Below are positions 428 to 53,746 of a DNA stretch of 64,000 nt, piece by piece. The translations under genes and the position numbers were made by a program. This DNA is from Perkinsus chesapeaki ATCC PRA-425. Its lineage: Eukaryota > Protista > Perkinsozoa. The stretch is taken from NCBI GenBank assembly GCA_013115145.1, contig JAAPAO010000110.1, positions 1-64,000 on the forward strand, in the 5' to 3' direction. Positions within the stretch are counted from its first letter, which is position 1, and the number at the start of each line of letters is the position of its first letter. The notes beneath the pieces were generated by a model, which saw only the letters and a program-made list of their open reading frames with translations, had not been told where the DNA came from and did not search any database.

Positions 428-3400
428 ATGTCTTTCGTGGATGATAATGCGGCAACCTATGAGAGTCTCGTGTCCGGTAACTCTGTTTTATTTTCGATTG
501 GACTATTGATTGCCTTTATTTCGGGGTACTCTTAGTCAACCTCAACAGAATCTTGTTAGGTGCTACCTCAGATACCTTGTGAACACCGGGAAGGTTAGAC
601 ATATATCAGAATCGACAGCGAGTGTTATAATTGGCTTTACGATCGGCATAGTAAGGATCACCGTCCCCTCCAGAGAGTCCCGAATATATACTAGAAGTCT
701 TTGTAAAATTTTGGAGTGCATCGCGGTGGCGAACTAACGCGATTCAAAAGCAATGTCGACCAAGCGAATCATGGATGGCTTTATCATCAAAAAATAACAC
801 ATGCTCCTCCTTCAGATAATGAGATTACTAGGGACAGGTGACCGGCAGGCGATGCTAAGCATTAGCGCTGAGCTGTTCTATTTTGTAAGCTGATATCTCC
901 TATGGAGCATTACCAGCTCGTACAGGCACTTTTACCACCTATAATATTCGAGGCTAGTTTCTCTCTTAACATGGAAATGTTCATGAATAATCTAACTTCT
1001 ATTCTAACATTTGCGTTCATCGGTAATAACAAGTACCGAACAGGACATACCAACCCAGTCACACAGGCACAACTATATCAGCCTACGTTACCTCTACTTT
1101 ACTATGGACCTTCTCAACGACCTGGCTAATAGGGCTCAAAAACACCGAAAGTCTGCAGGGCTACTGTATGGCATTCGGCGCCTCAATTTCAAGTACCGCC
1201 CAGCTGCACTCGGGCATTATCGTGTACCCCCAGGCACGGACCCAGTCGCAGTGTTGGCTCTCATGGGAGGCACGAAGTATCGTCCTAATAGGACTTTGCA
1301 TTCCCTAGTATTCGGTGAAAGCGTGCTTAATGACGCAGTGGCTATCGTGCTGTTTGTCAGCCATCAACGTGAGACCGCCTATTTGCCTATTTATGCATTC
1401 ATCTCTTTGTCCATCAGAAGCGTATTTTAGCGGCGCCGCTGACGGAGGAAAGTCGATGAATCCGCTCTTTCACTTCTTAATAGGTAAATATCGAAAGGTC
1501 CCCGGATCCATCCCTGGCTAGAACATTAATATTATCTTCGATCTAGTATGGTTGATATATATACCTATATTAATAAGTTGTACTGGATAGCCTCATCATC
1601 ATAATGTGATTCAGAATGATAATCATAACTTTTAAAACATCGATTGTTTCAACACACCCACCGCACACATGACTTATTTTCCGGGAAAATAAGTTCCAGT
1701 TAAGTTCCAGTTAAGTTTACTTATTTTCCATGAAGGAAAAATTTTCCCCGTCCCGTTAATCCATCGCCTCCTATCTCGCCTACTTGCCCCCAACTCTCAA
1801 CCTTTCAGTTACTCTTGGGTCGATAATATTCGGCGTAATGAGCGGTGCGTTGGTCAGTGCTACATACCGCAAATCGTAAGATTCATGAACTCTTATTGAT
1901 GACTATATTTCCCACAGGTCAGTATGGAAGTTCCCAAAATATGAAATAGGTGGCATGTTCCTCTCCATCTACATCACTTTCTCTCTATCAGAGCTACTCG
2001 GTCTCAGTGGCATTATGGCGATATTCTTCTTCGGATTGGTGAGTCCTACCATATTAGCGTTCGTTACTACTTTATTCCCCTACAGCTGTTGGTTAGAACA
2101 TTTTGACTGAACTCCCGGTAGCGTTTTCAAGTGTAGTCGATTTAGGCTTTAACGCCGACGGATTGCATGCAGCACCGCCTCGTCCCATATCAGATGCTCG
2201 CTCGGTACAATCTACACAACTTATCTCAACCCTCTCAAGTAGCCTCCAAGCTGGTGTTTAAGACCCTTGCATTCTTCTCTGAGAGTCTGGTAACATCTCC
2301 TGCTGTTGATATGCCTTTGAATGAACCCTTCTTAGGTGTTCCTCTATTTGGGTATTGTTGCGTGTATGTCCATTGGTGAGTATCGATGGAACGTTGGATT
2401 GATAGTATTCACTCTTGCATTGATAGTAAGTTTCTCGTTTGATAATAGTATCCTACATCCTGCTTAACATCATCATTCAGAAGGCTCTAGTAGGGTTATA
2501 CTATTACCAATGTATTGCTACTACTTAGTAGTATTATTAACCGCCAGAGGATAGGCAAAGTCTGCCGGCCTTCGTCACGCAATACTCAGTTTCCTTTCCT
2601 GGAAAAGAATGGTATTTCGAAATATCATATCATGGTTTGGTGAGCTGTAGTAGTACTAAAAGCTCTCTCGCCCCGAAGACCATACCATACTTCCGATAGA
2701 TCCACATCGCAGTAGCGTCATATTAATTAGGTATTCGCCAGAGCTTGTAATGTATACCCGTTGTCATGGTTATTAAACCATTTAACCCGGTACCAGCCCA
2801 TCACCATTAACACCCAGATCGTAAGTATCGTTCACCATAGTCCTCACTTACCATCTTCAATAGGTTCTTTGGTTGGCTGGTATACGTGGGGCGATAGCAT
2901 TCGTATTGATGTTGAGAATGCCAACACGACTTGGTGATGAAACCCGAGATGTGTTGGTCACGACAACGATATCGGTAAACTCTTTTCTTCCTCATCATCT
3001 AGTTGCCAGCCGGCCAATCCGCTCGTTATATTGTTTAACACTCTTCACTGACCATGCAGTCATCTGGTATCCGGCAAAATTCCGGAGGAGATGGGATATA
3101 AAATGTTTTCCTATTCCCGAAAGTTTATGGCTCCGAATTCACATTTGCCCTCGTCCCATCCAAGATGGTATTTGCGTTCAGATAATTGTTGTGACAACCC
3201 TCCTAGGTGGCCCACTCGTTGAGCATATAGCAGTTACACTTGGAGAGCTACGCCCAACACAGCCATCAGAAGACCGACTAAAGCAGAATCTGCATTCGGA
3301 TATGGTACGACAGTGACCTCAAGCATTAGACCATTACCAGCTTCAGGCGAGTGGCATTGGTCGAGCAGGATATTTGCCAACTGAGCTCAGTGAGAGGCTC

Positions 3401-3631
3401 AACGATGCCCTCGAATACGTTGATAGAAAATACATACAACAATACTTAGGCGGACCGCCACCACCACAGCACGGTGAGAATACAAGTCATCTCGCTGGTA
3501 TCATGTCGGGTGTTGGATCAGAGCCAACAGAGCGGTTGATTGAGGAGCCTTTGGATATCGGTATTGATACCTATTATCGAGATAATGATGCCAAACGATT
3601 GATGATTGCTCGATCAGTTGTCTTTGAGTAA
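428..3631 (+). CDS. Na+/H+ exchanger (CPA1/NHE family), multi-exon
   Basis: Spliced exons give NHE signatures HISESTASVIIG, LLPPIIFEASFSL, TDPVAVLALMG and SLVFGESVLNDAVAIVLF. ATG at 428, many short GT-AG introns, last exon stop at 3631. Confidence 0.9.
1491..1525 (+). pseudogene. tRNA 3'-half fragment (Val-like) at the 5' end of NHE intron 1484-1808
   Basis: tcgaa-aggtc-cccgg-atccatc-cctgg-ctagaac-a has exact 5/7/5/7/1 T-arm, acceptor and discriminator spacing; the T-loop has 2 substitutions. Intron supported by in-frame join FLI|VTLGSIIFG. Confidence 0.6.
1672..1753. repeat. Intronic palindrome/direct-repeat cluster
   Basis: acttattttcc-g-ggaaaataagt (11-bp arms, 1-nt spacer, 1672-1694), tandem taagttccag copies, a second acttattttcc, and ggaaaa-a-ttttcc. 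Confidence 0.7.
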
Positions 3632-3802: not shown

Positions 3803-5870
3803 CTAAAACCGTCCAATACGTTGGCACTGTTTAATCGTTCGTGCTAAAACGTCACGTTCTTCAAATGAAAAGGAATCAAGTGGTGCTTGCAAAGACTCAT
3901 CATAGGTCTGCCTTATAATAGCGAAACCTGGATGAAGGGTCAATCCTGAGGAAGTATAATATATACATAACTTATAGTATGGAAATATCTGCCGGCCCAA
4001 AACCCTTCGACGAATCACCATGGAAAATACACACTTTAGCTCTCAGAAGTGGGAATTTGATGAAGGCTATCCTCTTATTAATGCATTCAAAAATTTTAGA
4101 GCAGTATCCACTCGAAACGCACTGTGTAGATAATAAGATACTTCACCAACCACGACGCCGAGACATCTCACCTGTAGTCCCGAATCCTCCATTCACACAA
4201 GTCGGGCAAGTAAAGCTAGTCGCATCTGGTGACACACCTGCACACTTCTGGTGATACCATTTATCACAAACGTCACAGGTGATCCAGGCATCAGTGTCGG
4301 TATAGAGGGTAGTAACGACGTTACAAATCTCACACATATCAGTATACACCTGCAACGAAAGATACGCACGAAACGGTCGAGGTCGAGGTCGAGTTCCCAC
4401 CGTGGAGAAGTGTCGGCAACACTCCACTATATAGAAGAAGCGCATCTGCAAGGTGTTTCGGATATATCCTTCAACCGGGGGTGCCAGGACAGGATTCTCG
4501 CAGGCTTGTGGCAGCAGAGGAGCGTTAGGCAGGCGGTCTGGGAACTCGAAGATGTCGGTACATCGCTGATTGTGGGTGGCCCAATATTCCTGATAAAAGG
4601 GATAAAGAGCAACAACACAATCGGTAGGGGGTAGTACCAAAGTCCGCCGGTCACCAACCCATGGTCGAGGCCTGGTCCGGTCAAGGCTCAAATTGTGGAC
4701 AAGACACTGAGCGCGAACACGCCAATCAAAGGCCGCTTCAATTATGGTGATGACTCGGTACTCTACGGAGACAGCCAAAGGCAAGCGATCAATCTTGATC
4801 AACGCCTCCTGAGGTGAGGTCCCAAGTTCGATTCGCGGCACGGGCATTTCTTACGAGTAAATCATCGATAGTAACCATCACCAACGGCTTTGTCTCAGCG
4901 CCCTCATCCTCATTGCCTTGCTGCCCCTCTGAGACTTCCGTACTGAGATGGAGCTCCCAGGGTTCGAACTCGCGCAGATCACTAGCCGATACTCGACCTG
5001 AACCAGAATCCCCGAAGCTATCTGGGAGTCGCCTACCTTCACCGCTTGGCGGACGGAGAACTCGAAGCTTCCTCAATATCGTTCTAACACTTCTCATCGT
5101 ACTTCCCACCACCTTCCTCAACTCCCCAATTTCTGGCACCTTCAACCTTAATCGTCTGCTCCATGCTAGAAGGGATATGCAATCAGGAACTGACGCAAAA
5201 TTTGACAATCGGATCTCCAGCGAGCAGCAAGCCACCTGTAGGCTTCGGACTTTGCAGCCTCGCCATCAGCGCACTTTTCTCCGCTCTGCGTTGGTCGGGC
5301 GTTAGAGTACTAAGTACCTGAACGGCAGCAATAACGTGCGCACGCGTGCAGCCATACCGACCCTCCGACGTTTTCTTATTTCCATTTCGACAGGCGGCTC
5401 CACTCTGGAGACTCTAGGAGCATCCCAGGGGGCCAAATCGAGTATTCTCATCGACAATGGTAAAGACTCCGACGGACCTTCCGTCGCCAGTAGCTCTAGA
5501 GCCTTGCTTTTCTTAGAGGGCTTCTTAGGAGGGTAATAAAGCGGTAGGGGGTAGGCATAGTCGGGCACACCGTCGATACCAGGCTGCAGCCGTCCTTGTA
5601 TCAGAGCATCACGGATCGCCAAGTCGATAACATTATCGATCGCTTGATCGATTTCAACATTTTCCTCCACACTATCGCTTGTTACCTTCAAACAGTGGTT
5701 CACCTGATAGCACACAGCGACCTTGATTTTAGAATTTCGCAAAGCGTCTCGGAAAGCAGTACCGATCCATCCGAAACACCACGCGGATATCCCCACTCAA
5801 CGCTACGAGACTCCTCCTCGAGTAGACTTGCTCCAGATTTCGACAACTGCAATCTATGCTCAATCATATG
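3803..5870 (-). CDS. PHD-finger-containing protein (C-terminal exons; probably continuous with upstream minus-strand exons)
   Basis: CEICNVV...WITCDVCDKWYHQKCAGVSPDATSFTCPTC is a C4HC3 PHD finger. Exons join in frame across GT-AG introns, e.g. DDLL|EALIK. Confidence 0.72.
4816..4846 (+). pseudogene. tRNA 3'-half fragment, antisense within 46-nt intron 4809-4854 of the PHD gene
   Basis: gaggtc-ccaag-ttcgatt-cgcgg-cacgggc-a followed by tttc. The minus-strand intron GTAAG...CTCAG is phase 0 and joins two ORFs from the supplied track in frame. Confidence 0.8.
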
Positions 5871-5899
5871 ATTATAAGAAGATAGTGATTATTCAGTTG

Positions 5900-8800
5900 G
5901 TAAGGCGATGAAACAAAGTAATTTCGAGACTGTCCCTGCCGCCCTCCAAAACCGCCCCTCAAGTTGATGCTGTCATACCGCTCCGCTAATTTTCGTCTGC
6001 CACCAGCTCACCTGCAATTCAAGCACAGTTGCCTCCTCAACAGCTCGTTCTAGTTCAGACAGCAGGTGCCCATCACACGTAAAGGCAGCATGTCTGAGCT
6101 CCTCCGGGCATTCTCCAGGACCGTCAGCGAAGCTCTCCTCGGACTAAAACAATACCAACTCCGAGCGCCATCACTCCACCCCAACCTACCCCCGGCGATT
6201 TCAACATTCGTGACGGTGCGTCGACCGAATGGCAAATCTGCCTTGCTCTCTCGAGCGTGCAGTTGGAGTCGGTCAAGGCCTCAGAGAGCTTCGTGTTATC
6301 CGATCGTGCCCGCAGCTCGCGAGACAGCCACTTGTCCGCTCCAGTATAAACAAACAGCTTCTTAGAGGCCGCCAGCAAACTCTGTAGATTCGCTTCAACT
6401 GGATCAATCGGTGCACCTAACCAGTGGATCATTGAAATGACGCGGGTTCGATCCCCGGTCGCACCATTTTCGGCAGTTCCTATCGGTGTTGTTGCTGCTG
6501 CTGTGCCACCACCGCCCGTGATCCTTCTAGTGTAGCTATCCAGTATCGTTTCCATTGACTTCTTCCAATTCTCCTTGGCATCACTAATCTGTCTCGATAA
6601 TGTCCGCCATTCCTCCGCCGATTGAATGAGCTCTCGAGATTTAGTGAACTCCTCATTCTCCATCGACGCCGCCCGTATCACTTCTTCAGCACTTTGCAAT
6701 GACAACCTCCTAATAACAAAGCCGATATAATACAATCTATGTCTAAGACATATACTACACTGCTATTCTCTTTCAGTATAGCATAATAATGTTAATATCA
6801 CTGCGGAATTGAGAGCCCACAGGGTGACCCAGAAAATGCCATTTTTTTATTTTTGTAGTAAGATGAAAATAAAACTGGTCAATTTATTGAAGTTCAGAAG
6901 CTCTCGAGATCGGATTCAGAATAGTAATAGTGACCAGCCGCACTAAAGCCGATTTCTCCCGAGTTGTGAAGTTATCGTCGAATTATAGGGCCACCTGAGG
7001 CTCTCAATCACCATACCACCGACCACCGAGTGACTTCCCACTGTAACATTATCACATCAGACGAAACATTGAATCCTAGACTGTCCCCATAAAAAGTTAT
7101 TTGATTTACGTCAATAACAGATGCCTCCAAACGCTCCATCCCCACTCACTTTTTCCTAGACCGTCGGCTCTGATAGAACGACAGCCATTGGTCAGCCTCT
7201 CCAGCAGCTTTCAGGAAGCTCTCTTCGACCGCCACCTCCACATCAAAGCTGTCCAATCGTCCCATCAATTTCCGCAACGCTCCCAACGAAAACTCCGTGG
7301 CGGTTGACTCAGAAGATCCAGCAGGAGCAGCTGCTGCCTCCTCCTTCTTAACCAAAAGCTCGCTGACCTCCTGTTGCCATCCTTGGGCTGCCTCCTCAGC
7401 GGCAATCGCACCAGAGATGAACCCGACCTAAACGAGTGCACATCACTGCAGCGTCGTCGTCGCCGAGGGATATAAAGCCTTTAAGATGTATGCTTGGAAC
7501 AGCTTACCTGCATTAGGAAATCTCTCGTAACGAAATCCTTCAGGACCGGATCTTCATCAAGTTCTCGAACGTACTGTGATACCTGTTATATACAAATACA
7601 ACCGACAGATATTGATAGAGTGCCAGAAGGACTTGATCTAATTTCTTTCTAGTGCGTCACTCCTTCGACCAGGCAGACGGGTGCCCTACGTATCGGACAC
7701 CTATACTGTTGCAGGCCCATTGTGATGGGCGGCGGCGATGGTAGATATAATTAAACCAACAACGACCTCAAGATTAACGAATACAGTCGCGTAGAAGTGT
7801 TGTGAATACCATGAATGCTTTCCTATTTCTTCAAAGTAAATAATTCAGTAATTCAGCACCCTCTCTGCGAGTCCTGTTATCTTTGCTACATCTCCTGGAC
7901 ATATACTAGCAGGCAAGTAGTCTCGCAGTAACGTCCAGAGGAGCAGCAAACGGCAAATACTCCTACACCTTACTTCGCTCATTATGGGTTTATTAGTCCC
8001 CTCAATCCTATTCTCCTTTTCATCCCAATGAAACAGCTCTCGGGCACGCCGCTGCCATTCCAGCAAGGCGTTCACTAGGGCTCTCAATGAGCTGAGGGAC
8101 CAATAAATTCTCACGCGCCCCAAAATCATCGCTTCTTACCTTTCGAATGCAGTAACACGCGATTTGGAGGCATCGACCGCTCCCAGGAGCTCCAGCAGTT
8201 GACCGAAAAGCGATGGCTCGGCCTCCTCCTCGGCCTTCCTTTTTTTAGCGTCTTCCTTCTCATCCTTCTTCTCCTCGCTAACGTTCTCCTCTCCTTTCAC
8301 ACCGTCCTGCTCTATCGCCGCCACACGGCACTTCACCATGCGTTGAACAAGCCGCAAGGTCCTCCTTTCAAGCTCGGAATTCTCGGCAATTATACCATCA
8401 ACCTTGGTGATCAGCTCTGGCTCTCGTACCAGAGAACGATCAATGCGCTCAACAACTGCACTTAGTCGCTTCCACGACGCTATTTCAATAGGAACTTTTA
8501 CTCTGAGAGAAACGTCCATGCAAGGATTCGAACCCACGACCTATGCCTGCCTACCTAAGCATGTTACTGCTCGACGACTCCAGCTGTCCAAGGGCCGCAA
8601 TGAGATCCCACTCCCCAGCCCACGTCGATCTTCGCACTATATAGGGTGGGTAGTCCTCATCCAGGGAGGCACTCGCGGACTCCTCCCTCTCCTGGACAAC
8701 GTTGCCCTGCCCATCCCTAGAATTCTTTATATTCCACCTCTCCTGGCAAGTCGGTAACGATTCTATCAATAAGGTGCACGCCTGAGGCAGTAAGGTAGAT

Positions 8801-10549
8801 ATATGGAAATGGCTCAAAGTTTGGTCACAAGTTCCACATCAAAACCAATTTGTTGAGAAAATGTCGGTATGAGCTTTCTGTAGCAAACCATCGAGGATAT
8901 CAATTATTCTATTCACTACTTTTCTACGTTTTATCAGCTACTAATTACCAAATATATTAGTAAATCTATGAAGACCTATCCAATGCTTGAGAGTCCCAAC
9001 ACATCCAGAGTAACGAAAATCCAAAGACTTCAACATGTGACAAGTTACCTTTTCAATCTCCAACAGAGCTCTATCGAACTCGCTGGCCTGCTGTGGTATC
9101 GTCTGCGCCGAGGAGATATCGACCAAACGCGGAGAGTCGGAGCCCTCCTCGGCCCTCTGGAGTATCTTCAATCTGCTTGGATAGCTCTCACTGAGCTTTC
9201 TCAATACAGAGGAGTTCATAGGCATCTGAAATAAATAAATAAAAACGCCTGTGGGAATCGAACCCGGGTCGCCTCCATGATAAACTTACATTGCTAACCT
9301 CCTTACGTACATCCCACGCCCATACTTCTTCCCTCATAGCAGTAAGCAGATCCTCCAGCGGCTCCCTTGCCCTCGTTCCCGCAATACCAGTCCGAAGGTA
9401 GTCCATAAAAAAGAAGGACAAAGCTCTCAGCCCTCCGCTCGGCCTCGGGAACTGACAAAGGCAACTTGCACCATTCAAGCGTCGGGAAGGTCTCACCGTA
9501 GCCGCCTCGCTGTCCGTCAACTCCTTCACTCTGGACTCCCATTTATCCACTTCCCCACCTATCTGACGTATCTTTTCATATAGCAAATCATCCCTCAACC
9601 TCAGCTCCCCACCGCTAGCTCTGAGCTCCAGAAATATCTTACAGCTCGGAAGATTCTCCAGATTTTCCCGAATTTCTTTATCATAAAGAGCAACTTGCCA
9701 TCGCAATTCTTCCATAAGATTCTCGACAAATGCCGGTCCGCTCGTCGATCGATTTCCCCCTGCCTTCGGGCTCACCAAAGCCGGCCCCTGCTCATCAATC
9801 GAAAGCCTGTCACACGCCACACATATCTTTCTAGTGTAACCAATCTCCCATGCCTCCATGGCGGCCTCGGCATGCCTACCCCACTGCTCTCCATCCTCAA
9901 CAGCAACTTTGACTTCACCCAGTATCTTCGACAAGTCCACCGCCTTTGCTATTCCACTTTGCCTTATCTCCTCAAGTAGCAATCGTCCCTCCACAGGAGC
10001 CCTCCTCCTTCCCTGCTCTAGCATCTCTCTACATCTCCTTTCCCATCCCATCCCCCTCCTCAATAGTGACTCCACCTTATGACATACCTCAGGCACCGAC
10101 ACCCTCGGCAGCTCACCGTGCTCTCGCCATAGCTCTCTGAGCCCGCTTGTCGTCAGAGGCCCTCCTACCTCCTCGAGGCCCTCCATGGCCGTCTTCCCCC
10201 CAAGCTGGGCTTGATCGACAGCTATCGCCCTGAGCGCTTTATCAAGCCATCCCCTACCAGCCTCCTGAGCTTTTTCAAGAACCTTCACAATCTCATTATC
10301 CGCTTCATCCCGGAAGCCCTTTGAGTCCAAGTCTTCCAAGAGGCTCTCTACGACATGCAAAGAGATATGACTCTTCTTGCCTCCCAACTTCGACCGTGCT
10401 TTCTGGGACCATTCACCACTCGTGGAGGAGGGAAAGGACTTCTCCTCTCTCCTTGGTGGATTGCCGCTTTCAGCAGCAGCAGCAGCAAGGCACCTTGACC
10501 ATGGATAACAACAAGCAACAATAGGAGAACTTTCACAATAACGACGCAC
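5900..10549 (-). CDS. Large multi-exon helical/charged protein (middle part of a putative ELM2-PHD chromatin protein)
   Basis: Chain of minus-strand ORFs (9188-10549, 8941-9225, 8551-8817, 8136-8537, 7146-7355, 6124-6735) linked by in-frame GT-AG introns, e.g. KEVSN|MPMNSS and NMLR|VKVP. No diagnostic motif recognised. Confidence 0.55.
6439..6466 (+). pseudogene. tRNA 3'-end fragment, antisense within probable 48-nt intron 6417-6464
   Basis: gac-gcggg-ttcgatc-cccgg-tcgcacc-a-tttt. Candidate minus-strand intron GTGCGACC...GGTTAG is 48 nt and in frame, so the reading frame alone does not prove splicing. Confidence 0.65.
8513..8547 (-). pseudogene. tRNA 3'-half fragment, sense within 52-nt intron 8503-8554
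   Basis: ggcat-aggtc-gtggg-ttcgaat-ccttg-catggac-g-tttct. Intron GTAGG...CTCAG is phase 2 and restores NMLRVKVP. Confidence 0.75.
9246..9279 (-). pseudogene. tRNA 3'-half fragment (Gly-like), sense within 64-nt intron 9226-9289
   Basis: catggaggcgac-ccggg-ttcgatt-cccacaggcg-ttttt, about 3 nt shorter than canonical. Intron GTAAG...TTCAG is phase 0 and joins SN|MPMN. Confidence 0.72.
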
Positions 10550-10850
10550 CCGTTCAAAGCTAAATGTTCGACGCCAAGAATACGCTTATCCCCACAATAT
10601 GCTAATTTCAAAGAAAAATTACAGAAAATCGCAGCGAGATATAGACGGAATATTTTGTAGAGTTGGCTCAAGATATCCCCTCATCACATGCATCCTAAGC
10701 AAAGCCTACTTCAATGCAACTTCCGGTATAATCTGCAAGGCCTGTCCTTCCTTAACAAGCTCCTCCATCCTTTCCTCACTCCCCTGAGCCACTCGTGCTT
10801 CAAACCTCTCAGCTGGCAGTATCAAACGATGCAATGCGACAACCTGACTA

Positions 10851-11525: not shown

Positions 11526-11944
11526 GGTAAGGGGTAACCCTATAGTGACATCAATAGAATTAACGCATCCACAAATCACTTACTACACAGTATGACCCAA
11601 AGCATTCTCTACGGTGAAGGGTAGGTCCACGAAAAGAGACCACAAGATACTAAAGCCGCCCCGTTGCATCGACTACTCAACTTTATAATGTTAACTCCGC
11701 CAGTTTCATTAATGACGCTACGATTAATACTATTTTCCTAGTAGCGAAATGAAATGGTATGGAACCCATACCGACTTCTCAAATAAAATACATTTTCAAC
11801 TGACGTGGACCCTAAAAAAACTATGCAGTCCAACATTTCCGTTACCCATAAACCTTCAGCCATACGAATAGGCTGAGTACCCCCCCCAAGGGTGCTAGTA
11901 AACCCAAGTGATAGTACAGCCACTAACACAATCCCTATCAGAGA

Positions 11945-22824: not shown

Positions 22825-24544
22825 TTACACTTTCCTGGCAGCCTCAGCCCAGTAGTCTGTATCCAATGGGGTTCCATGAGGAGTTGCCAAGGCACTTCCC
22901 TCATCCACGTTGTAGTTCCCAAGGGTCTGCTGCCCATGCGGTATAAACTCAGGAGCATCTTTGGAGAGCTTCCGAGTGGAGCGTGAACCTTCTGCCGACT
23001 TGGCGGAGCCTCTACGGCCCGACTGAAGCCCATTGATCATGACGTTCACTTGTAAGGCTTCTTTTGTATACCTTGCCGCCGCTGCGCTCTTCCACAGGAA
23101 CAACACTAACTTTCTTCTCTTCTTTTTTTTCAGTCGGTTTATCTTCCTTTTGTACAGCTTCTTCTTTCTCCTTCGGTGAGGAGGCTTCGGTGGCCTGTTG
23201 AGTTCCCGCAATCTTGCCTCTGAAATTCACACCAACGTCCGCGTTATAGTTGCACGCATGCACAAGACGACGCGTCAGTGCAGATTACGCTGCAATTAGA
23301 CGTTCGAGCGCCTTTGGGCCTCCGGGGAAGTGGCGGTACTTGGTAACTGAGAAAAGGAAGGTAGAGGAAAGGCCTAGAATGCAGAATAACAGCGGCGGGA
23401 TTCGAACCCGCGCCCTTTCGGACTAGCGCCTGAAGCTAGCGCCTTAGACCACTCGGCCAAACTGTCGCTGGAATTGTTGATCATATCTTACCCAGGACGT
23501 TGGTTGGAATGAACTTTCCACCTTTCAGAGATAGCTCGAAGGTTACTTCATCATCTGCTGTCGGATACCTGCCCACCAGTACCTCACGTCGCTGAACCTG
23601 AGCTCACCAGAACTCCTTTCCACCAGAATCTTTGAAGGAATCTTTTGTGATTTCAAGATCACCCTTAACCTCGTTTGAAGATACCATCCCTCGACCTCTC
23701 TTCACCCAATACCTATTCCGCCAGATAACAACTCGCCTATAATAAGGCAATCACCATTGAACCTTTCCACAATAGCGGTAATTCTCCCCACTAGAGGACT
23801 TCCCAGCGACCGAAGAGCTCGCGGTTGTGCCGGATACCGCTTGTGAGTCTTTCTTAACATCACCCTCGGCAGACTTTTCTTTAGTAGGAGAGTTCGCTGC
23901 TGTTGTCGGGGCCGTGTTCTCTCCTGCCTTTTTGGCCTTGCCACCGCCCCCGCTGCTCGGCTTGGTGGGAGGTTTATGAGTTTTACTAACAGTTGGCATG
24001 TGAAGTGGGCTACTTAGTAAATAACACTTCCTCATCAACCATCCTTCATTGACACACTCCAACGCTACTGCACTGAGGATGGACAATCCGGTATATGCGA
24101 TACCATGGCACTCTTCAGAGGAAGTCACCAGTGGGTATTTCTGTCATCTCTTGCTCGATTTCAAGCACCTATCAAACTCTATCCCCCGGTATCGGCGACC
24201 CTCACTGTTTCGTTCACTTCTTCTTTCATCACTGACGGCTCATAAAGCTCCACACCTCCGCCCGATCCCCTGCTCTCTTTCTCTTCGGAAAATAGGTATC
24301 TAACCCCCTATCAGTCCCCAGCTTCCACAATCATCCACCTTGGATCACCTCCAAGCAGTATATCCTGCTGAGGCTGCAAGACTGAGTGCAGCGAGGCTCA
24401 CAGAGCCTCCCGTCATAACACCTACTTGATGATAACACTACAACCCAACGAAGGGCTGTCCCTACCGGAAGCCACAGTAGCTGCTGCCGCACCACAGCCC
24501 ACTGTACAAGCCCCTGCTGCAGCTGTCAAGAGAAGCTCGGCCAT
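22825..24544 (-). CDS. Hypothetical protein with C-terminal PAM2 (PABP-interacting) motif, multi-exon
   Basis: ATG at 24544 (MAELLLTAAAG), exons join in frame, and RKLSKDAPEFIP matches PAM2 (LSxxAxEFxP). Confidence 0.62.
23387..23466 (-). tRNA. tRNA-Leu(CAG), 80 nt, inside 118-nt intron 23374-23491
   Basis: GACAGTT-TG-GCCGAGTGGTCTAAGGC-G-CTAGC-TTCAGGC-GCTAG-TCCGAAAGGGC-GCGGG-TTCGAAT-CCCGC-CGCTGTT-A. A- and B-boxes intact, long variable arm; acceptor stem has a G1-U72 wobble and a U7:C66 mismatch. Confidence 0.88.
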
Positions 24545-41669: not shown

Positions 41670-42580
41670 ATGCCGTATTCTGTCCTGGTAGCCGGCACCC
41701 CTGGTGTAGGCAAGTCGACGTTCTCGAGGGAACTTGCGGCGGCTATTGGAGACTGCCGCGTTATAGAGCTCGGCAAGACTAGTAATAAATACATTGAGCA
41801 CGCATGAAGCTAATATACGTTTTAGTTGCGGCTGAGCATTTGTATAGTGAGTGGGATGATGAGCATAATTGTAGCATATTTGATGAGGAGGCAGTTGAGC
41901 AGCATCTTGGGAATCTCGGAGTTTTCGGCAAGGAGAATGTCGTTGTGGATTTCCATTCACCCGACTTCCTGCCTTCAGAATGGTACTAACAGGATGGATT
42001 AGGGAGCAAGTGGTGACATATTACAGCACAGTTCGCAAGGTGTTGCTGACATCGTGGGCATATCGTGCTCTCCTATATATAGAGACTACTCGCGAGTTTG
42101 ATGTGAAATATGTTACTAATGAAAGAATGAATAACCGTCGTAGTCGCATTACTTCGGAACTTCGGTATGCCTTTATATTTTGCAAGTCGTTACTTGTAGC
42201 ATCGGGTCAGTTTTAATCCCGTATCACCGTTTAGTTTGGGAGTGTTGTTTCGGTTATGGTGTCAACTGTCAGGTTCGACGTGGTGGTAGTTTTGCGGTGT
42301 TCAACGGAGGCATTGTGGTCTCGATTGGAGCAACGCCATTACACCGAGGAGAAAATAAAGGAGAACGTGGAGTGTGAGATTTTCCAGACGGTAAGGTCCG
42401 GTTGGTTGAGGTGATTGGTTCCTATTCTAAGGACTCGAGTTCGATCCCTGCGTTCAGATTCTTGACGATTGTCGAGAGCACTTCGGGAATGAGAAGGTGT
42501 TGGAGCTGCAGAGCGTTTCTATCGACGACATAGCTAAGAATGTACAAAGCGTCCTGGCCAAGCTAGGCAAGGCACAATGA
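41670..42580 (+). CDS. AK6: Adenylate kinase 6 (Fap7/hCINAP-like), multi-exon
   Basis: VLVAGTPGVGKST P-loop, VVDFHSPDFLPSEW, FDVVVVLRCS and ENVECEIFQT|ILDDCREHF. Confidence 0.88.
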
Positions 42581-45529: not shown

Positions 45530-47404
45530 ATGGCCAAAAGGGGAGAGTTCCCACTAGTATCGTCATCCTCTTTACTGTTGCATTATTGATTCTCTTATCC
45601 ATTTATTTTGGGTTAGCATCCTCTCTACCTTCACTAGCAGCCTTATTTATTCTGTTACTCGGTTCCTCCTTGTTCGAGGGTAATAATCGATGGCCTCATC
45701 ACCCCCGTACTATGATGGCCCTACTGCGGCAGAGTCGTCCAAGACGAAGTCTCTCTGGGGAAGATTCCTTCATCGCGTTAAAGTCTTTAACAAAGCTCGA
45801 ATGGATTACGTGCGTCTAGCATGGCCCACTGAATGGGCAGTCTTCAAGAAAGGTGCCTGGTAAGATATCTTAGCTTCATCCTTGCACTTTGAAGAATGCT
45901 CTATCAGGTGGGGTATCCTATTCTTTATTATAACCTTATTAATCCACAACTGGGTTCATAACTGCGTTTACATGTTGGCAGGCCAATACGGAGTGTAAAC
46001 CTAACCCTCCCCGATCCCATCGCCAGCCGTTTCCTCAGATACGGTCCGTATGGTCGCCCTGGCAACCCTGTAGTCGACCTTCTCTTCGAGCTCTTCGGTC
46101 CTGGTCCTGCCGAATGGAATGTAGGCCCTTGTCACATCACTATGCGTATCTTTGCTTTCAGCCTGCTCCTGGAGACATCATCCTATATTTCACCATCTTA
46201 ATGGGCGTCGGCTACGCCCTACGACCATTGCTCTTCCCTTTTCCATACAGTAAGCCATCCCTCAGCTCAAAGTGAACAATGCCTAAAACGATAAAATTTA
46301 ACATAAATGCATCACCAACTTATTTGTCATGAATTCCAGAAAGTCTAGATTCCTCACTATTGAAAAGTCGAAAACAAATTCGTCATATTGAAGAATCAAT
46401 TTTGGAAAAAGCTACGAAAGAAGCTTTCTGTAATCTCTGAACAGGGTTCATATGAACCCCTTGGGTCGCCCAAGTGTGATGATCAATAAAAACTCAACAG
46501 CAAATTTCAATCGCTTTGTCGCACTGCATCAATCCTGAGGTTTTGTCGAGTATATTGTATAGTTCCTCGGACTGGGAAGCTCTGAGGACGACTTGTCTGG
46601 GCCATTGTATCCTTTTTAGGGGCTATGAATATCTTATGGAGATGGGCAATGGTCGCGAGTTTGGCAACGTATGCCCGACTCGCTTCTTTCATATTCACGG
46701 TGCGTTACAGATCCACACAAGTGCGCACTATGAAGAATATCTTTTAGATTCTTCCTGGTCCCGCGGACCACTGTTCTGAGGCCAATTTCGATCCGCCTAC
46801 TACGGCGAGTGAAATTTTCGCTCGAATATTTGTATCCGGTGGATGCAGCGATCTAATATTCTCAGGACACATGCTGTACGTTATTACAGTGACATGCGCC
46901 TTATGTAAGTCTCTCTACCGAAAGGTCCCTGGTTCGATCCCCGGCAACGGCATCTTTTTCTCAGTTCGCTACGCTCAAAACTGGTTCATTAAGTATTTCG
47001 CACTCGTTCTTAACATACTACAAGGAATTCTCATCATCGCGTCACGGCGTCACAATACTGTCGACGTGGTAAGGCTTGACCATATCCTTTTGTCACTTCA
47101 TTTCTATCAGGTGGTTGCCGCTTATGCCGTGCCTTGCATTTGGTGCACCTTCGCCTACTTTGTAAGCTCGCATCACCACGTGGCATTTATCAAGTATTGC
47201 CAGGTACCCAACGACTTTGAGGTTGAAGTGCCACCAGAGATCACTGGCCAGGACACAGGCAACTCGGGGACCGATGCCGGAACGATGAGCGAATGCTCAG
47301 AGCCTATCACTGATCTCAATCCTAGTAGCCATACCCGTGCTAGTGGTTCTACAACTGTTACCGATATCGAACTTGGTCACCCGGTGGCCACTTCTACGGC
47401 GTAG
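45530..47404 (+). CDS. Sphingomyelin/IPC synthase-like (PAP2 superfamily) paralog 1
   Basis: LIHNWVHN, GGCSDLIFSGH and RRHNTVDV motifs; start approximate. Confidence 0.85.
46918..46952 (+). pseudogene. tRNA 3'-half fragment (Phe/Val-like), sense, in 60-nt intron 46905-46964
   Basis: ccgaa-aggtc-cctgg-ttcgatc-cccgg-caacggc-a-tcttttt-ctcag; the phase-1 intron restores TCAL-F-RYAQNW. Confidence 0.85.
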
Positions 47405-48963
47405 TGGTAGGGGTGTAAAAAACACCCCCAGATTTGTTGCAACCGTCTTGTGTTGCTCTGAGCCCTCGAGTAGGGTTGCTTATCCTATTCCAGACAGTAT
47501 GCCTGAATACCATTTCGTCCGGGCCAAAGTATGACGTTGCCGATTGTGCTGTTAATACGTCAATATCAATTGGTCCGTGACTTGTGTCTTATACAATCGT
47601 GATACTTATTGTTCCTTCCAAAACCGTTTCACCGCGGGATACCTCACTTCGTTCCCACGTTACTCTTTCTGGCTTGAGTTTATCAATTACCGACTCCAGT
47701 TGAATGGTTCTTGCGCTTCGATAAACTTGTACCGGAATTGGCGTAATTGATTAACTTATTCGAGACTAAGTGAAGCATCAAGGCTTGACTCTACACCAGA
47801 AAGGCAAATGTGGGGGGGGCTGTGACGCCGATTGATAACGCGTCACAGAAATGCGCCATAATATTATGATGATATTGTAAGCGGAACTCGTGAAGCGCTT
47901 CGCTCCGCCGAGCCCGACTTATGTTCTTTGTGCCAGCTTGTCCCATTTAGGCCTTCTTATATCGAATCTTTCTCACATATCTTTAGCTGAGCTATGTAAG
48001 CTTAGTACGCTATAGTATATACGTCAAAGTAGACATAAGTATAGTTGCTTAATAGTTATTTCATAGTTATTCATAGTTCTTTTTAGAGTCCTAAGTGTAG
48101 GTTCTCTAGTTCTAAGTATTGGTTAAGTTCCTTTGTTGGTTGCATTACTAACTAAGGCCTTATCTGGTATTATTTAAGAAGTTATTGAGTTATATCAGTT
48201 GGCGCGTGATTGGTTCACACGCCCAAACTCCTTTTTATAAGGCTTATTAATATATTCTTGTGGTTGGTTGTACCGAGACCGTCCACAATATTTTGTAGTG
48301 CTTATGACCAACACAAAAGGAGACATTTTCACTTCTCACTTGTTTCGCTTTTCTAACTCCATTTCGGGCGTGCGCTTGACAGGCGCGAGATTGAAGGAAG
48401 ATCTTCAATTGAAGAAGAATCTTGGCCCGATAACTGTCCGTTGAATAAGATTTAGGATCTTTCCTAATACGAACTTGTCTGTCCTCTCTTCCGGCCCATA
48501 ACAATATTTCCTAATTCGTTCTTTACGTCATTCTGTCACTTCTTGTTCACCTTGTATAATAATTATATATTATTATAATATATGATTACCATCTCACTAG
48601 GAGCCACCTTCACGGAACTGCAGAAGTCTCTATGGCAACTGCGAACAAACTCAATTCGGCCTCGATGCTGAAATGTGGAGAACCTCTCTTTTTAGCTCCT
48701 TTATACCGCGTTGCTTACAAGTTGCTGAAAACTAATAAAATCGCCCGGGTTACCTGGAGCGAAGTTACGGCAACTGTTGTTACAGGCAACCGCAGTTGTT
48801 ACAACTGCGAGTAGACGGAGTAATCAATTGCTTCAATTTTGGACGTCTGAAAGTACCTCGTAAAATAACTTGGATTGTAAAGTGAAATCGATTGAAGCAC
48901 CAAGCTAGCAAGCACAGAGCTCGAACGCAGACAGCAGTTTAACACGCTCTTGTTTTTGAACCA

Positions 48964-51181
48964 ATGGCAGCAGCTGGCAGCACCACTTTACGGTTATTTT
49001 TTAAAGGGAGATGGAAGTATATTAAAGAGGCATGGCCGGTTGAATTGGCAGTCCTCAAAAAGGGATGGTATGGCGGACTGTGGGGTACTTGTTGAAGACA
49101 ATTGTTCCTTCAGGCCTTACATGGTTGGTGGTTTAATATCACTTCTTATTCATAATTGGGTTCATAACATGGCTTACTATTACGCTGGAAAATACCATGT
49201 GTAAGTGGGAATGTGCTCAGGACGACTCGGGCAAACGACGAGGCACGTCAATTTTGGATGGACACTTATCGAGGCTACCCATCATCCATCTTTATTATTT
49301 ACCCTTTTTATCGTTCTCAACTGAACGTAGACTCAATTAGACTATCTCTCCCCGATAGGTACGGACCCTACAAAGGGCCCAACAATCCAATCCATGATTT
49401 TGGTTTCGAATGGTTCGGGACAGCTTTCGTCGGTTGGTCGGTAAGGTCCATTGTTACCCTACCTGTTCGATGTCTTGCTCCAGATGCCTCCTGGTGACAT
49501 CGTACTCTATATTACTCTTATTATCGGCATCACCTTTGCAGTCCGCCCCTTGTTCTTTGCCTTTCCAACACGTAAGCCCCATGGTTTGGATATTTAAATG
49601 CAGCGTCGAATAGGTACTATGAATATTTTATGGAGAGTATTAACTATGAGCATCTTCACTGTGACGGGCCGGTGTATCTCATTCATCTTCACAGTAGGCT
49701 TCAATCCGACCTTGTGGGAATCTTTCGGACGTTTTTCTTCTCAGTTGCTACCGAGCTCGGCCGAGCATTGTTCTGAAGAGGATTTTGATCCTCCCAAAAA
49801 TTGGGGGGCTATATTTACCCATTTGTCGGTGTCAGGAGGATGCAGTGACCTCATATATTCAGGGCATATGATGTACGCATTGCTCTGCACATGTGCTTTA
49901 TGTAATACCACCGGATGAGGGCGGCGGCGGAGGGGAAATATCCAATAGGAAATTCACAAACAGGAGGGCATGCTCTTTGGTGCTGGGGTTGTGGAAAGTG
50001 ATGTGGATAGGAGTAATATATATGTTCGATATAAGTTTTATTGCATTCAAGCATAATACTTTATTATTATAGTAAGAAAACCTTTCATATCATATTGGTT
50101 ATTGATAAGTATGATATAAAAAAGCTCTCTTATATATGCTTCAAGTTTGATAATAGTTGTATTACTATTTTCTCCAACCAAAAGCCGAGTCCGTCAAATC
50201 TGGCGTTGATGTGTTTTCCTGCATTTTCCTCAATAGCTCGTTCTGTGTCAGTTCGATATGCCCAGAATTGGTACATTAAAATAATATCGCTGTTATTGAA
50301 CATCCTTCAAGGCTTTGTAATTGTCGCCTCAAGAGCACATTACAGTGTCGATGTGGTAAGTAGTTCGAGGCCACTATCAATTTTGTGATCATTTCTTGTC
50401 AGATAGTAGCAGCTTACACCATACCAGCGTTCTGGTGCACATTTGCCTATTTCGTAAGTTGCACTGAGGGGGTCTGTAATTTCAGCGTTCGACGGTGGAG
50501 ACATGCGCTCTGGCGGAATAATATCGGAGCTGTCAAGAGAAATTACTTAAATTGATTGGGGGAATTTCGTGGAGGTCATATTGGTCGGGCATAATATGAA
50601 AAACATAGTCAAGCGTTTTCAGCGGACTTACATCTCGAAACACCTGCGTCACAGATTTAGTGAGTAAATACTTTTCTTATCGCGTGCGAAGTCGCTGTAC
50701 TTTGAGAAATTGATAGATTCTAGAAGAAGTTACATGTTCAAGAAGGATACACGGCGGCTTCTTTGGTTTACCTATTCCATGGGCGTACCTTTTATATTCG
50801 ATTTCTACTCACATTTAGTCGGCAGAATCTATCCTAGAAGTATCTACGAGTGAATATTTGGGAGTTTCAGCTTGGTAAATTGCGACAGTTCAGTTTGTCA
50901 AATATCTTTTGTTGAGCGCTCACCATTTTGTTGGGACGTCCCATTCCGTGCAATACTTGACCATTTTGGTATTCCCTATTTGTCAGGTCCCTGAGGATAT
51001 CGGTCCGAATACGGTACCGCTCCCAAAAACGTCGGGGGATTTAGGCGGAGCGCCAGCCGTCTTGTCCGATTCACCTGCTGAGAACGCGATTGATCTCGAG
51101 CTTGGACCTATTGGAGTCACCGCATCTTCATCGTCATCGGTTCTCCAGGATAGGGAACAAGAGGTCAACGGAAGAGCGTGA
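48964..51181 (+). CDS. Sphingomyelin/IPC synthase-like paralog 2
   Basis: MAAAGSTT start, LIHNWVHNMAYYYAGKY, GGCSDLIYSGH and RAHYSVDV; same intron positions as paralog 1. Confidence 0.87.
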
Positions 51182-52159: not shown

Positions 52160-53746
52160 ATGAAATCGTCTATACGTGCTAGAATCGACTACGTCAAAGA
52201 GATATGGCCGTTAGAATGGCTCGTGTTGAAAAAAGGAGCATGGTGAGATAACCGTATCATTGCAGTGGAATTGGCTTGCACGACATCGCGGCCGCTAGAG
52301 CACCCGTAAAACCTCTCTCAGCTGCTTGAGGCTCATCGGGTGTGTTTGGTCATATGAAAAAAGTTTTCCCTTTCCCGCGATGAGAGTCGTTATTTCTCGA
52401 ATCTCCAGACATCTCCCCTTCGTAAGGTGCTTTTCCGTAACAAACTGAAGTGTCCATACTATACAAGTCATGCTACACATTCTTTCTTTTCCTTCACGGC
52501 GATTCCGAGGTCCTTCTAGAGAGATATTTGTGAATAATAAAATGCAGTTGAGGAATGTATATTCTCCTGCTTCAGGTGGGGGATCCTACTGTTTGTCGTT
52601 ACATTGATCGTCCACAACTGGGTGCATAATATGGCTTATTACTACGCTGGAAAATATGAAGTGTAAGGAGTCTAGCGGAGCGAAGCTCTAAATTATTATT
52701 ACCTTGCAGTTACGGTCCATACAATGGTCCAAAGAATTCAATACACGACTTCTTCTTCGAATGGTTCGGGACAGGCCTTGTCGATACTGCTGTAGGTGGG
52801 CGCAGGTTCGATCCCTGCACACTGCATTTTTCCAGGTTGCCCCCGGTGATGTAACTAATTATTTCAGTCTACTATTCGGTATTTGCTACGTTCTTCGCCC
52901 TTTACTCTTTCCCTTTCCGCACAGTAATATTTAATATTGCTTCGCTCCGCTGTACTATTGTTCCTAGGGGCAATGAACATGCTTTGGCGGTGGGGCGTGG
53001 TCGCCAGTCTGGCCACCTATGCTCGATTGCTTACTTTCATGGTCACTGTAAGAATTTGCTGTTAGCTCGGAGTTTCACGCCTCATCTTTCAGCTACTTCC
53101 CGGTTCGGCACAGCACTGTTCCGAGGAAGAGTTCAATCCACCAGCAAACTGGGGTGTCATTCTAACCAGGCTCTTCACCTCGGGAGGCTGCAGTGATCTT
53201 ATTTTCTCTGGTCATATGATGTATACCATTATCGTCACTTGTGGAATATGTAATTAAAATGCCTCTACTGGGGTTTGAACCTGTGCCCTTTCAGGTCGCT
53301 ATAGCCGTAATGTTTACATTAAGGTTTTTCTTATCTTACTCACTATATTACAAGGCTTCCTTATCATAGCCTCACGCTCTCATTATAGCGTCGACGTCGT
53401 AAGTTGGTCTAACAACTATCCAAGAAGTATCTTTCCTCCTTAGGTTGTCGCTGCATACGCGGTGCCCTGCATGTGGATCGCCTTCGCGCATTACGTAAGT
53501 GTGATGTGCTGAATACTCTCACATACGTCTCAGGTCCCCAATGACTTCCGAGTCGAAGATTCGGAATCAATCTCCTCTCCTGACGAATCTGGTCGCGAGG
53601 AGGAGGAGGGTGATAGCGCCCTGCCGTCTCCAGGTTCAGTCAGCAATCGCCCACATAGTAAAATATCTTCCGAGAGCACCAGGACCTCTCCCGGAGGGCG
53701 TGACTTGGAGCTCGGCGAGTCCCCGCCGACCGGAGCTAGATCTTGA
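52160..53746 (+). CDS. Sphingomyelin/IPC synthase-like paralog 3
   Basis: IVHNWVHNMAYYYAGKY, GGCSDLIFSGH and RLHYSVDV; start approximate. Confidence 0.87.
52798..52826 (+). pseudogene. tRNA 3'-end fragment (Leu/Ser-like), sense, in 44-nt intron 52792-52835
   Basis: gggc-gcagg-ttcgatc-cctgc-acactgc-a-ttttt-ccag with a perfect 5-bp T-stem; the phase-0 intron joins VDTA|VAPGD. Confidence 0.85.
53260..53293 (-). pseudogene. tRNA 3'-half fragment (Leu-like variable arm), antisense, in 45-nt intron 53250-53294
   Basis: (c)tgaaagggc-acagg-ttcaaac-cccag-tagaggc-a-tttt; the phase-1 intron restores TCGI-C-RYSRN. Confidence 0.7.

Follow-up and report, generated by a model that had tools for sequence, protein, structure and literature searches.

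The window analysed here, a 64,000-nt stretch of contig JAAPAO010000110.1 (positions 1-64000) from Perkinsus chesapeaki, which parasitises clams and oysters, holds a Na/H exchanger gene, a KDM5-like (PLU-1/PHD) gene, an NF-X1 exon and three tandem PAP2 paralogues (C, D and E). An initial annotation had reported that eight introns of these genes contain the 3' end of a tRNA gene. They are listed here with the tRNA-derived piece (relic) found in each and with the lengths of the flanking open frames; introns with B-box remnants follow.

1484..1808, + strand: 325-nt intron of the Na/H exchanger gene; weak sense relic 1496-1531 directly after the 5' splice site; frames of 58 and 22 codons
4809..4854, - strand: 46-nt intron of the KDM5-like gene; antisense relic on the + strand, 4817-4852; frames of 137 and 221 codons
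6417..6464, - strand: 48-nt intron of the KDM5-like gene; antisense relic on the + strand, 6437-6472; frames of 99 and 96 codons
8503..8554, - strand: 52-nt intron of the KDM5-like gene; sense relic 8507-8542 on the - strand; frames of 94 and 121 codons
9226..9289, - strand: 64-nt intron of the KDM5-like gene; sense relic 9237-9272 on the - strand, with a shortened acceptor strand; frames of 432 and 94 codons
46905..46964, + strand: 60-nt intron 5 of PAP2 paralogue C; sense relic 46923-46958; frames of 52 and 145 codons
52792..52835, + strand: 44-nt intron 2 of PAP2 paralogue D; sense relic 52797-52832; frames of 44 and 32 codons
53250..53294, + strand: 45-nt intron 5 of PAP2 paralogue D; antisense relic on the - strand, 53254-53289; frames of 61 and 48 codons
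42391..42457, + strand: 67-nt intron adjoining the NF-X1 exon; B-box remnant GAGTTCGATCCCTG ending after the T stem
49694..49744, + strand: intron 4 of PAP2 paralogue E; degenerate B-box remnant GGCTTCAATCC
50356-50402 and 49441-49483: introns 6 and 2 of PAP2 paralogue E; similar remnants

All eight intervals are real GT..AG introns by tests for the U2 type: on the host strand each starts with GT and ends with AG (8/8), and removal joins long open frames. Splicing is seen directly at 53250-53294, which is skipped by an RNA contig from two small RNA sets; this is the one of the eight introns that these sets cover. RNA contigs also skip the paralogous or remnant introns 49441-49483, 49694-49744 and 50356-50402, and paralogue E is spliced in RNA at 49902-50251 and 49441-49483, the positions of introns 46905 and 52792. 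The P. marinus and P. olseni orthologues likewise have introns at these two positions. An intron lies at the same place as 1484 in P. marinus (contig L002, again a long one), as 9226 in contig L001, as 46905 in P. olseni (contig L004) and paralogues D and E, and as 52792 and 53250 in L002 and the paralogues. For 4809, whose length is not a multiple of 3, and for 8503, intron status follows from frame logic alone. The interval 6417-6464 is in frame and stop-free, so that frame logic is no proof there and its status rests on the alignment with homologue P0002, which lacks some 16-17 residues at this point; removing the interval improves the alignment. An assembly gap (17152-17251) lies at least 7.8 kb from each of these introns, and its flanks are collinear with P. 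marinus (window 16591-16734 and 17834-18013 match L002 8044-8130 and 7663-7824); continuity or frame across it has no bearing on the intron finding.

The pieces copy tRNA-gene DNA over its 3' third, made up of the variable loop, the T arm with the B box, the 3' strand of the acceptor stem, the discriminator and a T-run. The B-box motif GGTTCRANYC occurs 11 times in the window, against 1.72 expected and a maximum of six among 100 shuffles. A covariance model (R2) trained on the 3' ends of three real tRNAs and on four relics from other species, and on none of the claimed fragments, recovered seven of the eight pieces and two real tRNA genes at E <=0.02, and nothing else in the window. The window-wide E-values were 1.3e-7 (46923), 3.8e-7 (52797), 2e-4 (4817), 2.4e-4 (9237), 2.7e-3 (6437), 0.011 (53254) and 0.019 (8507); the annotated observation is confirmed. 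The eighth piece (1496) reached 0.12 under R2 and 0.047 under a further model, R1, its T loop being degraded to GGATCCATCC; here the intron stands, with its counterpart in P. marinus, and the tRNA likeness is weak. By comparison of gene spans with product lengths, introns take up about 40% of the annotated stretch; all seven model matches lie in introns, none of them longer than 64 nt. The remnant at 42391..42457 (R1 E=0.12) was missing from the initial annotation; that at 49694..49744 was found by motif alone and falls under the covariance-model threshold.

Seven pieces keep the spacing of a tRNA gene end (T loop, 4 nt, 7-nt acceptor strand, discriminator, T-run), the exception being 9237 with its shortened acceptor strand. 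The annotated account needs correcting for the 6417 relic, whose positions 72-73 and T-run fall in the upstream exon. Every clear module retains its 3' end and T-run and is truncated 5' at about positions 38-49, and several 5' splice sites lead directly into the variable loop, as GTAGGTC. Both orientations occur, three of the eight pieces being antisense, as annotated. In an alignment of the pieces none of the eight carries CCA and all acceptor strands differ, again in agreement with the annotation; the lack of CCA together with the T-run terminator shows that the content comes from tRNA genes rather than from mature tRNA. ARAGORN and Rfam found no complete cloverleaf with A and B boxes among the eight, positions 1 to about 38 being missing. 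T-stem pairing has mostly decayed (mean 3.5 of 5 pairs), a correction to the earlier account; the 52792 relic is perfect, with 5/5 pairs and a run of five Ts.

Three further tRNA sequences lie in the window:

23387-23466, - strand: intact tRNA-Leu(CAG), sense within a 145-nt intron (23347..23491, - strand); ARAGORN and Rfam, 49 bits
62518..62602, - strand: dead tRNA of full tRNA length, with a perfect D arm, broken acceptor and anticodon stems, a T arm and a T-run
63420..63494, + strand: intact tRNA-Arg(TCG); ARAGORN and Rfam

P. marinus has the same nested tRNA-Leu (L002 5950-6029), its anticodon stem differing by a compensatory change. The dead tRNA precedes a start codon by about 330 nt (the next exon begins with ATG) and lies outside any proven intron; it is called by neither ARAGORN nor Rfam, belongs to the R1 training set and scores E=0.62 under R2. 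The acceptor strands of the two intact tRNAs match none of the relic acceptor strands, a comparison confined to the tRNAs of the window. An A-box scan of the window gave 13 hits against 7.1 expected, none adjoining a 3' piece. The statement that A boxes and 5' halves are absent holds for the eight pieces and needs correcting for other introns, where A-box-like 5' pieces occur (three at most, all weak, against about ten 3' modules, the A box being harder to detect). Split or permuted tRNA genes, which would call for a matching 5' half nearby and a bulge-helix-bulge junction, were considered and rejected, as no A-box hit adjoins a 3' piece and the host introns contain no complementary partner for the relic acceptor strands.

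Comparison between species bears on the age of introns and pieces. Intron positions are common to the three tandem PAP2 paralogues, P. marinus, P. olseni and a fourth contig, often without a piece. All three paralogues and P. marinus have intron 2, which carries a module in D alone: the orthologous intron of P. marinus (L002 1220-1275, 56 nt) and paralogous intron 2 of C (41 nt) hold no relic. At the 9226 position, L001 has the intron without the module. These comparisons show the introns to be older than the tRNA pieces they contain. The proposal that the pieces create introns finds no support, since every comparable claimed intron has its position in paralogues or other Perkinsus species. 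Two pieces are confined to P. marinus, species-specific pieces occur in both lineages, and of the seven pieces that could be compared, four lack a counterpart in a second species. tRNA 3' pieces are present in three Perkinsus species and have been gained or lost between them. Introns with a module measure 44-64 nt, those without 39-48 nt, and in 52792 the interior has been replaced, not lengthened, relative to its module-free counterparts.

For three pieces, the orthologous intron of a second species holds a counterpart that agrees in orientation and register, against about 0.6 such cases expected from independent matches. The interiors of orthologous introns are identical at 0.41-0.53, compared with 0.43-0.52 after shuffling, and the exceptions hold a conserved island. 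For intron 5 of paralogue C, the island between P. chesapeaki and P. olseni reads AGGTCCC.GGTTCGA.CCCC (18/20), and the P. olseni relic (L004 5702-5738) scores E=1.1e-7 under R1, which had not seen that relic. Intron 5 of paralogue D shares GGTTYGAACC (9/10) and AAAATGC (7/7) with P. marinus, whose relic (antisense, L002 1703-1738) is in the same register as that at 53250; the two acceptor strands are unrelated, yet both relics end in GCA and a T-run. In the NF-X1 intron, P. chesapeaki and P. olseni share GTTCRATCCCTG (11/12); the P. olseni intron retains GTTCAATCCCTG, an acceptor-like strand and a T-rich tail, whereas the P. chesapeaki relic has lost its acceptor strand by deletion and kept the B box. 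In these three pairs, a small sample, only the B-box core is unchanged (once also the T-run), while change elsewhere in the intron has reached saturation and T-stem pairs have not been preserved. The initial interpretation is borne out in part, its suggestion that B boxes are kept being supported.

With a probability of roughly 0.45, we interpret the pieces as eroded relics of intron-nested tRNA genes in which the B box persists, probably as a binding site for TFIIIC. Only five tRNA types account for more than 500 copies in P. marinus (PMC3706591). tRNA genes would be unusually numerous in Perkinsus and would nest in introns, where a dying copy would be trimmed by a strong pressure holding introns near 45 nt. 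The 3' module would survive because its B box may still be bound as DNA, most likely by TFIIIC, in the manner of ETC sites. Its ends would suit an intron either way: in sense copies the T-run could act as polypyrimidine tract, a part that in antisense copies could fall to the strand complementary to the purine-rich variable loop and T stem. That the B box is kept is supported by its core being the conserved island in three orthologous pairs whose interiors are otherwise at the level of shuffled sequence. The reading as a whole is favoured by the recovery of the pieces with R2, the greater age of the introns, the islands of all three shared pieces, the P. olseni relic found by R1, the NF-X1 deletion, the nested tRNA-Leu, the dead tRNA and the A-box-like 5' pieces. 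Against it, 3' modules far outnumber 5' pieces, and among the introns examined no partly eroded nested tRNA gene was caught. As four of seven comparable pieces are unshared, no constraint can be both strong and universal.

Isolated B boxes with neither an A box nor a functional tRNA, conserved between species and independent of orientation, are known from the ETC sites and chromosome-organising clamps of yeasts. The Perkinsus pieces resemble these in having the B-box consensus without A box or tRNA and, in three pairs, diverged flanks, and they probably share the mode of action, TFIIIC binding to DNA without Pol III transcription, as predicted here from sequence. ETC sites, however, are few and mostly intergenic, whereas the B boxes described here occur in about one-fifth of short introns and retain, from the parent tRNA gene, its acceptor strand and terminator. 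Intronic nesting of functional tRNA genes, in either orientation, is widespread in nematodes and has been seen in many eukaryotes, and the window holds an intact one in its 145-nt intron, kept in P. marinus; the eight pieces differ in not being genes, in lacking the 5' two-thirds and in lying in introns of 44-64 nt, shorter than a tRNA.

Ready-made 3' pieces may instead have been captured directly into existing introns, with no whole gene ever there, either by templated break repair or template switching onto a tRNA gene (with microhomology linking the T-run to the polypyrimidine tract, and AGGT to the 5' splice site) or through a 5'-truncated retro-copy of a primary pre-tRNA. We hold this to be rather unlikely overall, although the perfect 52792 piece in an old 44-nt intron fits capture or overwriting better than slow decay, its counterparts in P. 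marinus and paralogue C being module-free. The small length difference between introns with and without modules, the uniform retention of 3' end and T-run with a 5' cut, the splice sites running into the variable loop and the single-species pieces in both lineages point the same way, and the 6417 tRNA end extends 6 nt into conserved exon sequence, as expected of a microhomology junction. Templated or filler-DNA insertion at repaired breaks would likewise swap an intron interior with little change in length, but its junction signatures were not seen here, and repeated use of the same 36-nt part of tRNA genes is not a known feature of it. Target-site duplications and filler signatures were looked for and none was visible; moreover, the three pieces shared in orientation and register exceed the number expected independently, the NF-X1 pair represents erosion of a longer relic by deletion, and A-box-like 5' pieces occur in other introns.

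Unlikely to a slightly greater degree, in our judgement, is that the pieces arose by erosion or capture and are functionless, the B box appearing conserved because relics are recognised by it, possibly with ectopic gene conversion from many tRNA genes resetting the core to the tRNA consensus. The conserved positions are common to most tRNAs, and repeated overwriting from tRNA genes would mimic the pattern without function. In keeping with this, the non-orthologous relics at 46923 in the window and at L002 14074 have cores identical at 21/22 positions, the orthologous relics of intron 5 in paralogue D end alike despite unrelated acceptor strands, and most comparable relics are unshared. The orthologous relics were, however, found through intron position rather than through the motif, and their cores, about 90% identical, stand between flanks that are wholly randomised. 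Conversion tracts of about 20 nt would also be unusually short, and conversion should at times restore the T-stem pairing that has decayed in most relics.

A role at the RNA level is improbable. GUUCNANYC is the recognition motif of T-loop enzymes, and the modules lie within transcribed, spliced RNA, where a T-arm-like hairpin could aid the splicing of ultra-short introns or be a target of tRNA-modifying or -processing enzymes. The decayed T-stem pairing, not maintained in orthologous pairs, argues against this, as do the three antisense pieces, whose RNA bears the complement, and a hairpin-based scan of the window without enrichment (19 hits, 18 expected).

A mobile introner-like family or a tRNA-derived SINE that creates introns on insertion would account for short pieces in both orientations, in many genes and filling whole introns, and is very improbable given that intron positions are common to module-free orthologues and paralogues. 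Introners (Micromonas, Aureococcus, dinoflagellates, fungi) also form whole introns from short sequences in many unrelated genes, but are near-identical copies that create their introns, whereas the Perkinsus introns predate contents that differ from one another. tRNA-derived SINEs and MITEs similarly scatter tRNA-gene DNA through genes, often in introns and in both orientations; the pieces described here, each only about 36 nt and from many parent tRNAs, have no family consensus, A box, unrelated body, tail, terminal repeats or detectable duplications, so that the initial judgement against a single SINE family was sound.

We found no paper describing relics of tRNA-gene tails in introns. A tentative extension, possible though far from assured, is that Perkinsus has thousands of intragenic B-box sites, in about every fifth short intron, that are actively maintained by selection or by ongoing overwriting. 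Under selection, the B boxes would be putative landing sites for TFIIIC (or condensin/cohesin) that organise chromatin or couple to transcription or splicing; under overwriting, a continuing process would rewrite intron interiors from tRNA genes. If true, either version would be an undescribed way for Pol III promoter DNA to shape spliceosomal introns.

Eight intervals had been proposed in the initial annotation as introns that carry tRNA pieces, and we name them by their first position (C, D and E are tandem PAP2 paralogues):

1484-1808, Na/H-exchanger gene
4809-4854, KDM5-like gene
6417-6464, KDM5-like gene (probable intron)
8503-8554, KDM5-like gene
9226-9289, KDM5-like gene
46905-46964, intron 5 of PAP2 gene C
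52792-52835, intron 2 of PAP2 gene D
53250-53294, intron 5 of PAP2 gene D

Read on the host strand, each of the eight runs from GT to AG and connects long open frames, and the lengths of five are not multiples of three, so that their removal is needed to keep the frame. RNA contigs from the same organism skip 53250-53294 and also the paralogue E introns matching 46905 and 52792. Window positions 27270-55510 (28,241 nt) are identical to the same coordinates of the P. chesapeaki record JAAPAO010000110.1 (GCA_013115145.1), so that the window forms the first 64 kb of this contig. For comparison we used P. marinus GG680729.1 (L002), which is syntenic with several parts of the window, a P. olseni contig (L004) collinear with 41.8-49.9 kb, and a 3.9-kb contig of a relative (L001) spanning part of the KDM5-like gene; protein identity among the compared Perkinsus loci is 55-80%. 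Introns occupy the same position in orthologues of 1484, 52792 and 53250 (P. marinus), 9226 (L001) and 46905 (P. olseni). No orthologue of introns 4809, 6417 and 8503 was found in a search with a 420-aa exon, which returned one short contig only. By frame logic, 4809 and 8503 are predicted introns; 6417-6464 keeps the frame and contains no stops, and since a distant homologue is about 16-17 residues shorter at this place and its alignment improves once the interval is removed, 6417 is a probable intron. The proposed intron status thus stands, for 6417 as probable only. Intron comparisons use curated introns; codon-usage and homology-guided gene finders were too noisy for a full census. All claimed introns are at least 7.8 kb away from the assembly gap at 17152-17251, and the gap leaves the finding unaffected; its flanks have the same order and orientation as in P. 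marinus.

Two side observations concern the KDM5-like gene (4143-11579). A candidate intron of about 45 nt (9452-9496, minus strand) lies inside a long exon frame where L001 has a 185-nt intron (2709-2893). The gene itself sits between TGS1 and the Na/H exchanger in P. chesapeaki and is missing from the P. marinus interval (L002 11170-11970), which indicates a rearrangement or insertion.

The pieces share one layout, running from variable loop through T arm, 7-nt acceptor strand and discriminator to a T-run. They lack CCA, and the acceptor strand differs in each, in agreement with the earlier view that they are not one repeat or SINE family. The B-box/T-loop decamer GGTTCRANYC occurs 11 times in the window (1.72 expected). 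To avoid circularity, a covariance model (R2) was trained without the claimed pieces, on four relics from P. marinus or P. olseni plus the 3' ends of three real tRNA genes. Its top matches window-wide were two real tRNAs followed by the claimed pieces, so that the tRNA-derived content was recovered for seven pieces at E≤0.019 (1.3e-7, 3.8e-7, 2e-4, 2.4e-4, 2.7e-3, 0.011 and 0.019) and more weakly for 1484 (0.12). All seven significant matches fall inside introns of 44-64 nt; a comparison of gene spans with product lengths puts the intron share of the annotated stretch at about 40%. Further matches lie at 46650 (E=0.038), 14259 (E=0.061) and a dead tRNA at 62.5 kb (E=0.62), the first of which was rejected as a chance match in coding sequence. 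T-stem pairing is largely decayed, with 3.5 of 5 pairs left on average, and a hairpin-only T-arm scan of the window gave no enrichment, so the signal is one of sequence, not of fold. Rfam reported two full tRNAs only in the whole window and nothing in 62480-62640 or 29900-30100, as its tRNA model does not cope with broken stems and partial length. Judged by sequence, the pieces are best read as copies of genes or primary transcripts from many tRNAs. A 6/7 match between the acceptor strands at window 52797 and P. marinus 1703 is not significant among about 90 relic pairs and was kept as a lead only.

Further states of tRNA genes occur in the window:

42391-42457, NF-X1 intron: B-box remnant, truncated after the T stem
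introns 2, 4 and 6 of paralogue E: degenerate remnants, spliced in RNA
23347-23491, 145-nt intron: intact tRNA-Leu(CAG), sense to the host
62518-62602: dead tRNA of full tRNA length; its D arm is perfect, its A and B boxes are correctly spaced, its stems are broken
13824-13834, 25403-25413 and 29928-29938, all minus strand: A-box/D-arm-like 5' pieces in three probable introns

The P. marinus locus holds the same nested tRNA-Leu, whose anticodon stem shows a compensatory change. The A-box motif is weakly enriched (13 versus 7.1 expected); two of the three 5' pieces resemble the 5' part of class II tRNAs, and the one at 29.9 kb abuts the 3' splice site and is preceded by a B-box-like remnant. 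No coding frames flank the tRNA-Arg at 63.4 kb. The dead tRNA was rejected as an intermediate of intron filling, as the ATG exon lies about 330 nt downstream and an 85-nt splice joins no frames; RNA contigs end before it. Its T-run is followed by ATTGCAG/GT (62508-62520, minus strand), about 330 nt upstream of the start codon, which may mark the end of an intron in the 5' UTR or an acceptor site for a spliced leader. Clear relics, three in P. marinus L002 (21 kb) and one in P. olseni L004 (8 kb), have about the density of the window.

A B-box-like GGTTCAATTCCCAC with a T-rich tail (14259-14294, plus strand; L002 9837-9872, minus strand) sits, in antisense orientation, within the final coding codons of a minus-strand gene and is about 90% conserved in P. 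marinus. The B-box match at 14267 was for these reasons rejected as an intron relic; for this stretch, an exonised relic and a coincidence of coding sequence are both possible.

The introns predate their contents. All intron positions are common to PAP2 genes C, E and D and the P. marinus orthologue of D, and the perfect intron-2 module is found only in D (52792, 44 nt), with no trace in intron 2 of P. marinus (56 nt) or of paralogue C (41 nt). Aligned between P. chesapeaki and P. marinus, the intron-2 interior of D reaches an identity of 0.41, the level of shuffled sequence; intron interiors are saturated throughout (0.41-0.53 versus 0.43-0.52 in shuffled controls). At the position of 9226, L001 has a 45-nt intron without relic; conversely, the P. 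marinus Na/H-exchanger modules (L002 14074-14109 and 12163-12198) are missing from the orthologous P. chesapeaki introns. Modules are therefore present in one species and missing in the other in both directions, as the suggested comparison with congeners could reveal. The idea that tRNA pieces create introns is contradicted, since paralogues and orthologues often have the same positions without a module; the modules have been gained or lost on a speciation time scale. The intron-5 relics in both C and D, in opposite orientation, are compatible with chance at about 20% occupancy and were set aside as evidence.

A second repeated element, the 12-mer GCTTCGCTCCGC, occurs seven times in the window (0.19 expected) and three times in P. 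marinus L002:

window, minus strand: 52675-52686, 13796-13807, 42828-42839, 39308, 59520
window, plus strand: 52939-52950, 47897-47908
L002: 1100-1111 (minus strand), 1377-1388 (plus strand)

Introns 1 and 3 of PAP2 gene D carry it as an inverted pair, each copy being the sole island of its intron conserved between P. chesapeaki and P. marinus; intron-intron pairing and a protein-binding site are possible roles. The stretch 47880-48260 is a high-copy repeat (word depth 880-4700 in the organism's own DNA run, baseline 108).

In three cases, orthologous introns of two species carry relics in equal orientation and register. In intron 5 of gene C, 18/20 positions agree with P. olseni between the variable loop and the beginning of the 3' T-stem strand, whereas neither the acceptor strand nor the remainder can be aligned; the P. 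olseni copy scores E=1.1e-7 with a model not trained on it. Intron 5 of gene D matches P. marinus at 9/10 positions of GGTTYGAACC and 7/7 of the adjoining AAAATGC, with 2/9 in the 9 nt between. The NF-X1 intron matches P. olseni at 11/12 positions of GTTCRATCCCTG, with an acceptor-like strand and T-rich tail that are present in P. olseni and deleted in P. chesapeaki. Three such cases were seen, and about 0.6 coincidences are expected among six strong comparable cases (p about 0.02, our own estimate, assuming about one-fifth of short introns occupied and two orientations). The suggested retention of B boxes is thus supported by a conserved core in three intron pairs amid saturated interiors, and some pieces are old with only the promoter core kept. 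No constraint on stem pairing was seen in the relics and both orientations occur, which points to a DNA-level role of the B box rather than an RNA fold.

Our leading reading, to which we give a probability of roughly 45%, is that intron-nested tRNA genes erode and leave the B box as a predicted protein-binding site, most plausibly for TFIIIC; the TFIIIC-bound ETC sites of yeast are the proposed parallel. In sense modules the terminator T-run, 9-12 nt from the AG, would double as the polypyrimidine tract, and in antisense modules the complement of the purine-rich variable loop and T stem would take this part, with the A-run abutting the 5' splice site. It is less probable that templated repair or truncated retro-copying writes 3' pieces directly into introns that already exist, although this would better fit the perfect 52792 module in an old intron of unchanged length, the near absence of 5' halves and the 6417 piece that runs on into the exon. 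Somewhat more doubtful still is a lack of any function, by which the core would look conserved as the part common to all tRNAs, and gene conversion may reset it.

Our literature search turned up no account of intron content derived from tRNA, whether in Perkinsus or elsewhere. Kojima and Jurka (PMC3706591) describe tRNA-targeting Dada transposons in P. marinus, together with over 500 copies of five tRNA types, which shows an unusually large tRNA-gene pool. The present results add evidence for module turnover and for the precedence of introns. Intron interiors are usually regarded as free-drifting filler. In this parasite, defined 36-nt DNA of Pol III genes fills a sizeable share of ultra-short introns, and its promoter element survives longer than all other intron sequence across species. 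P. marinus is culturable and transfectable. If the pieces are written by repair or retro-copying, the turnover of intron sequence would have a new source that can be dated; if TFIIIC binds the relics, the intragenic ETC-like network of Perkinsus would be by far the densest known, and the genus would offer a simple model for the role of such sites.
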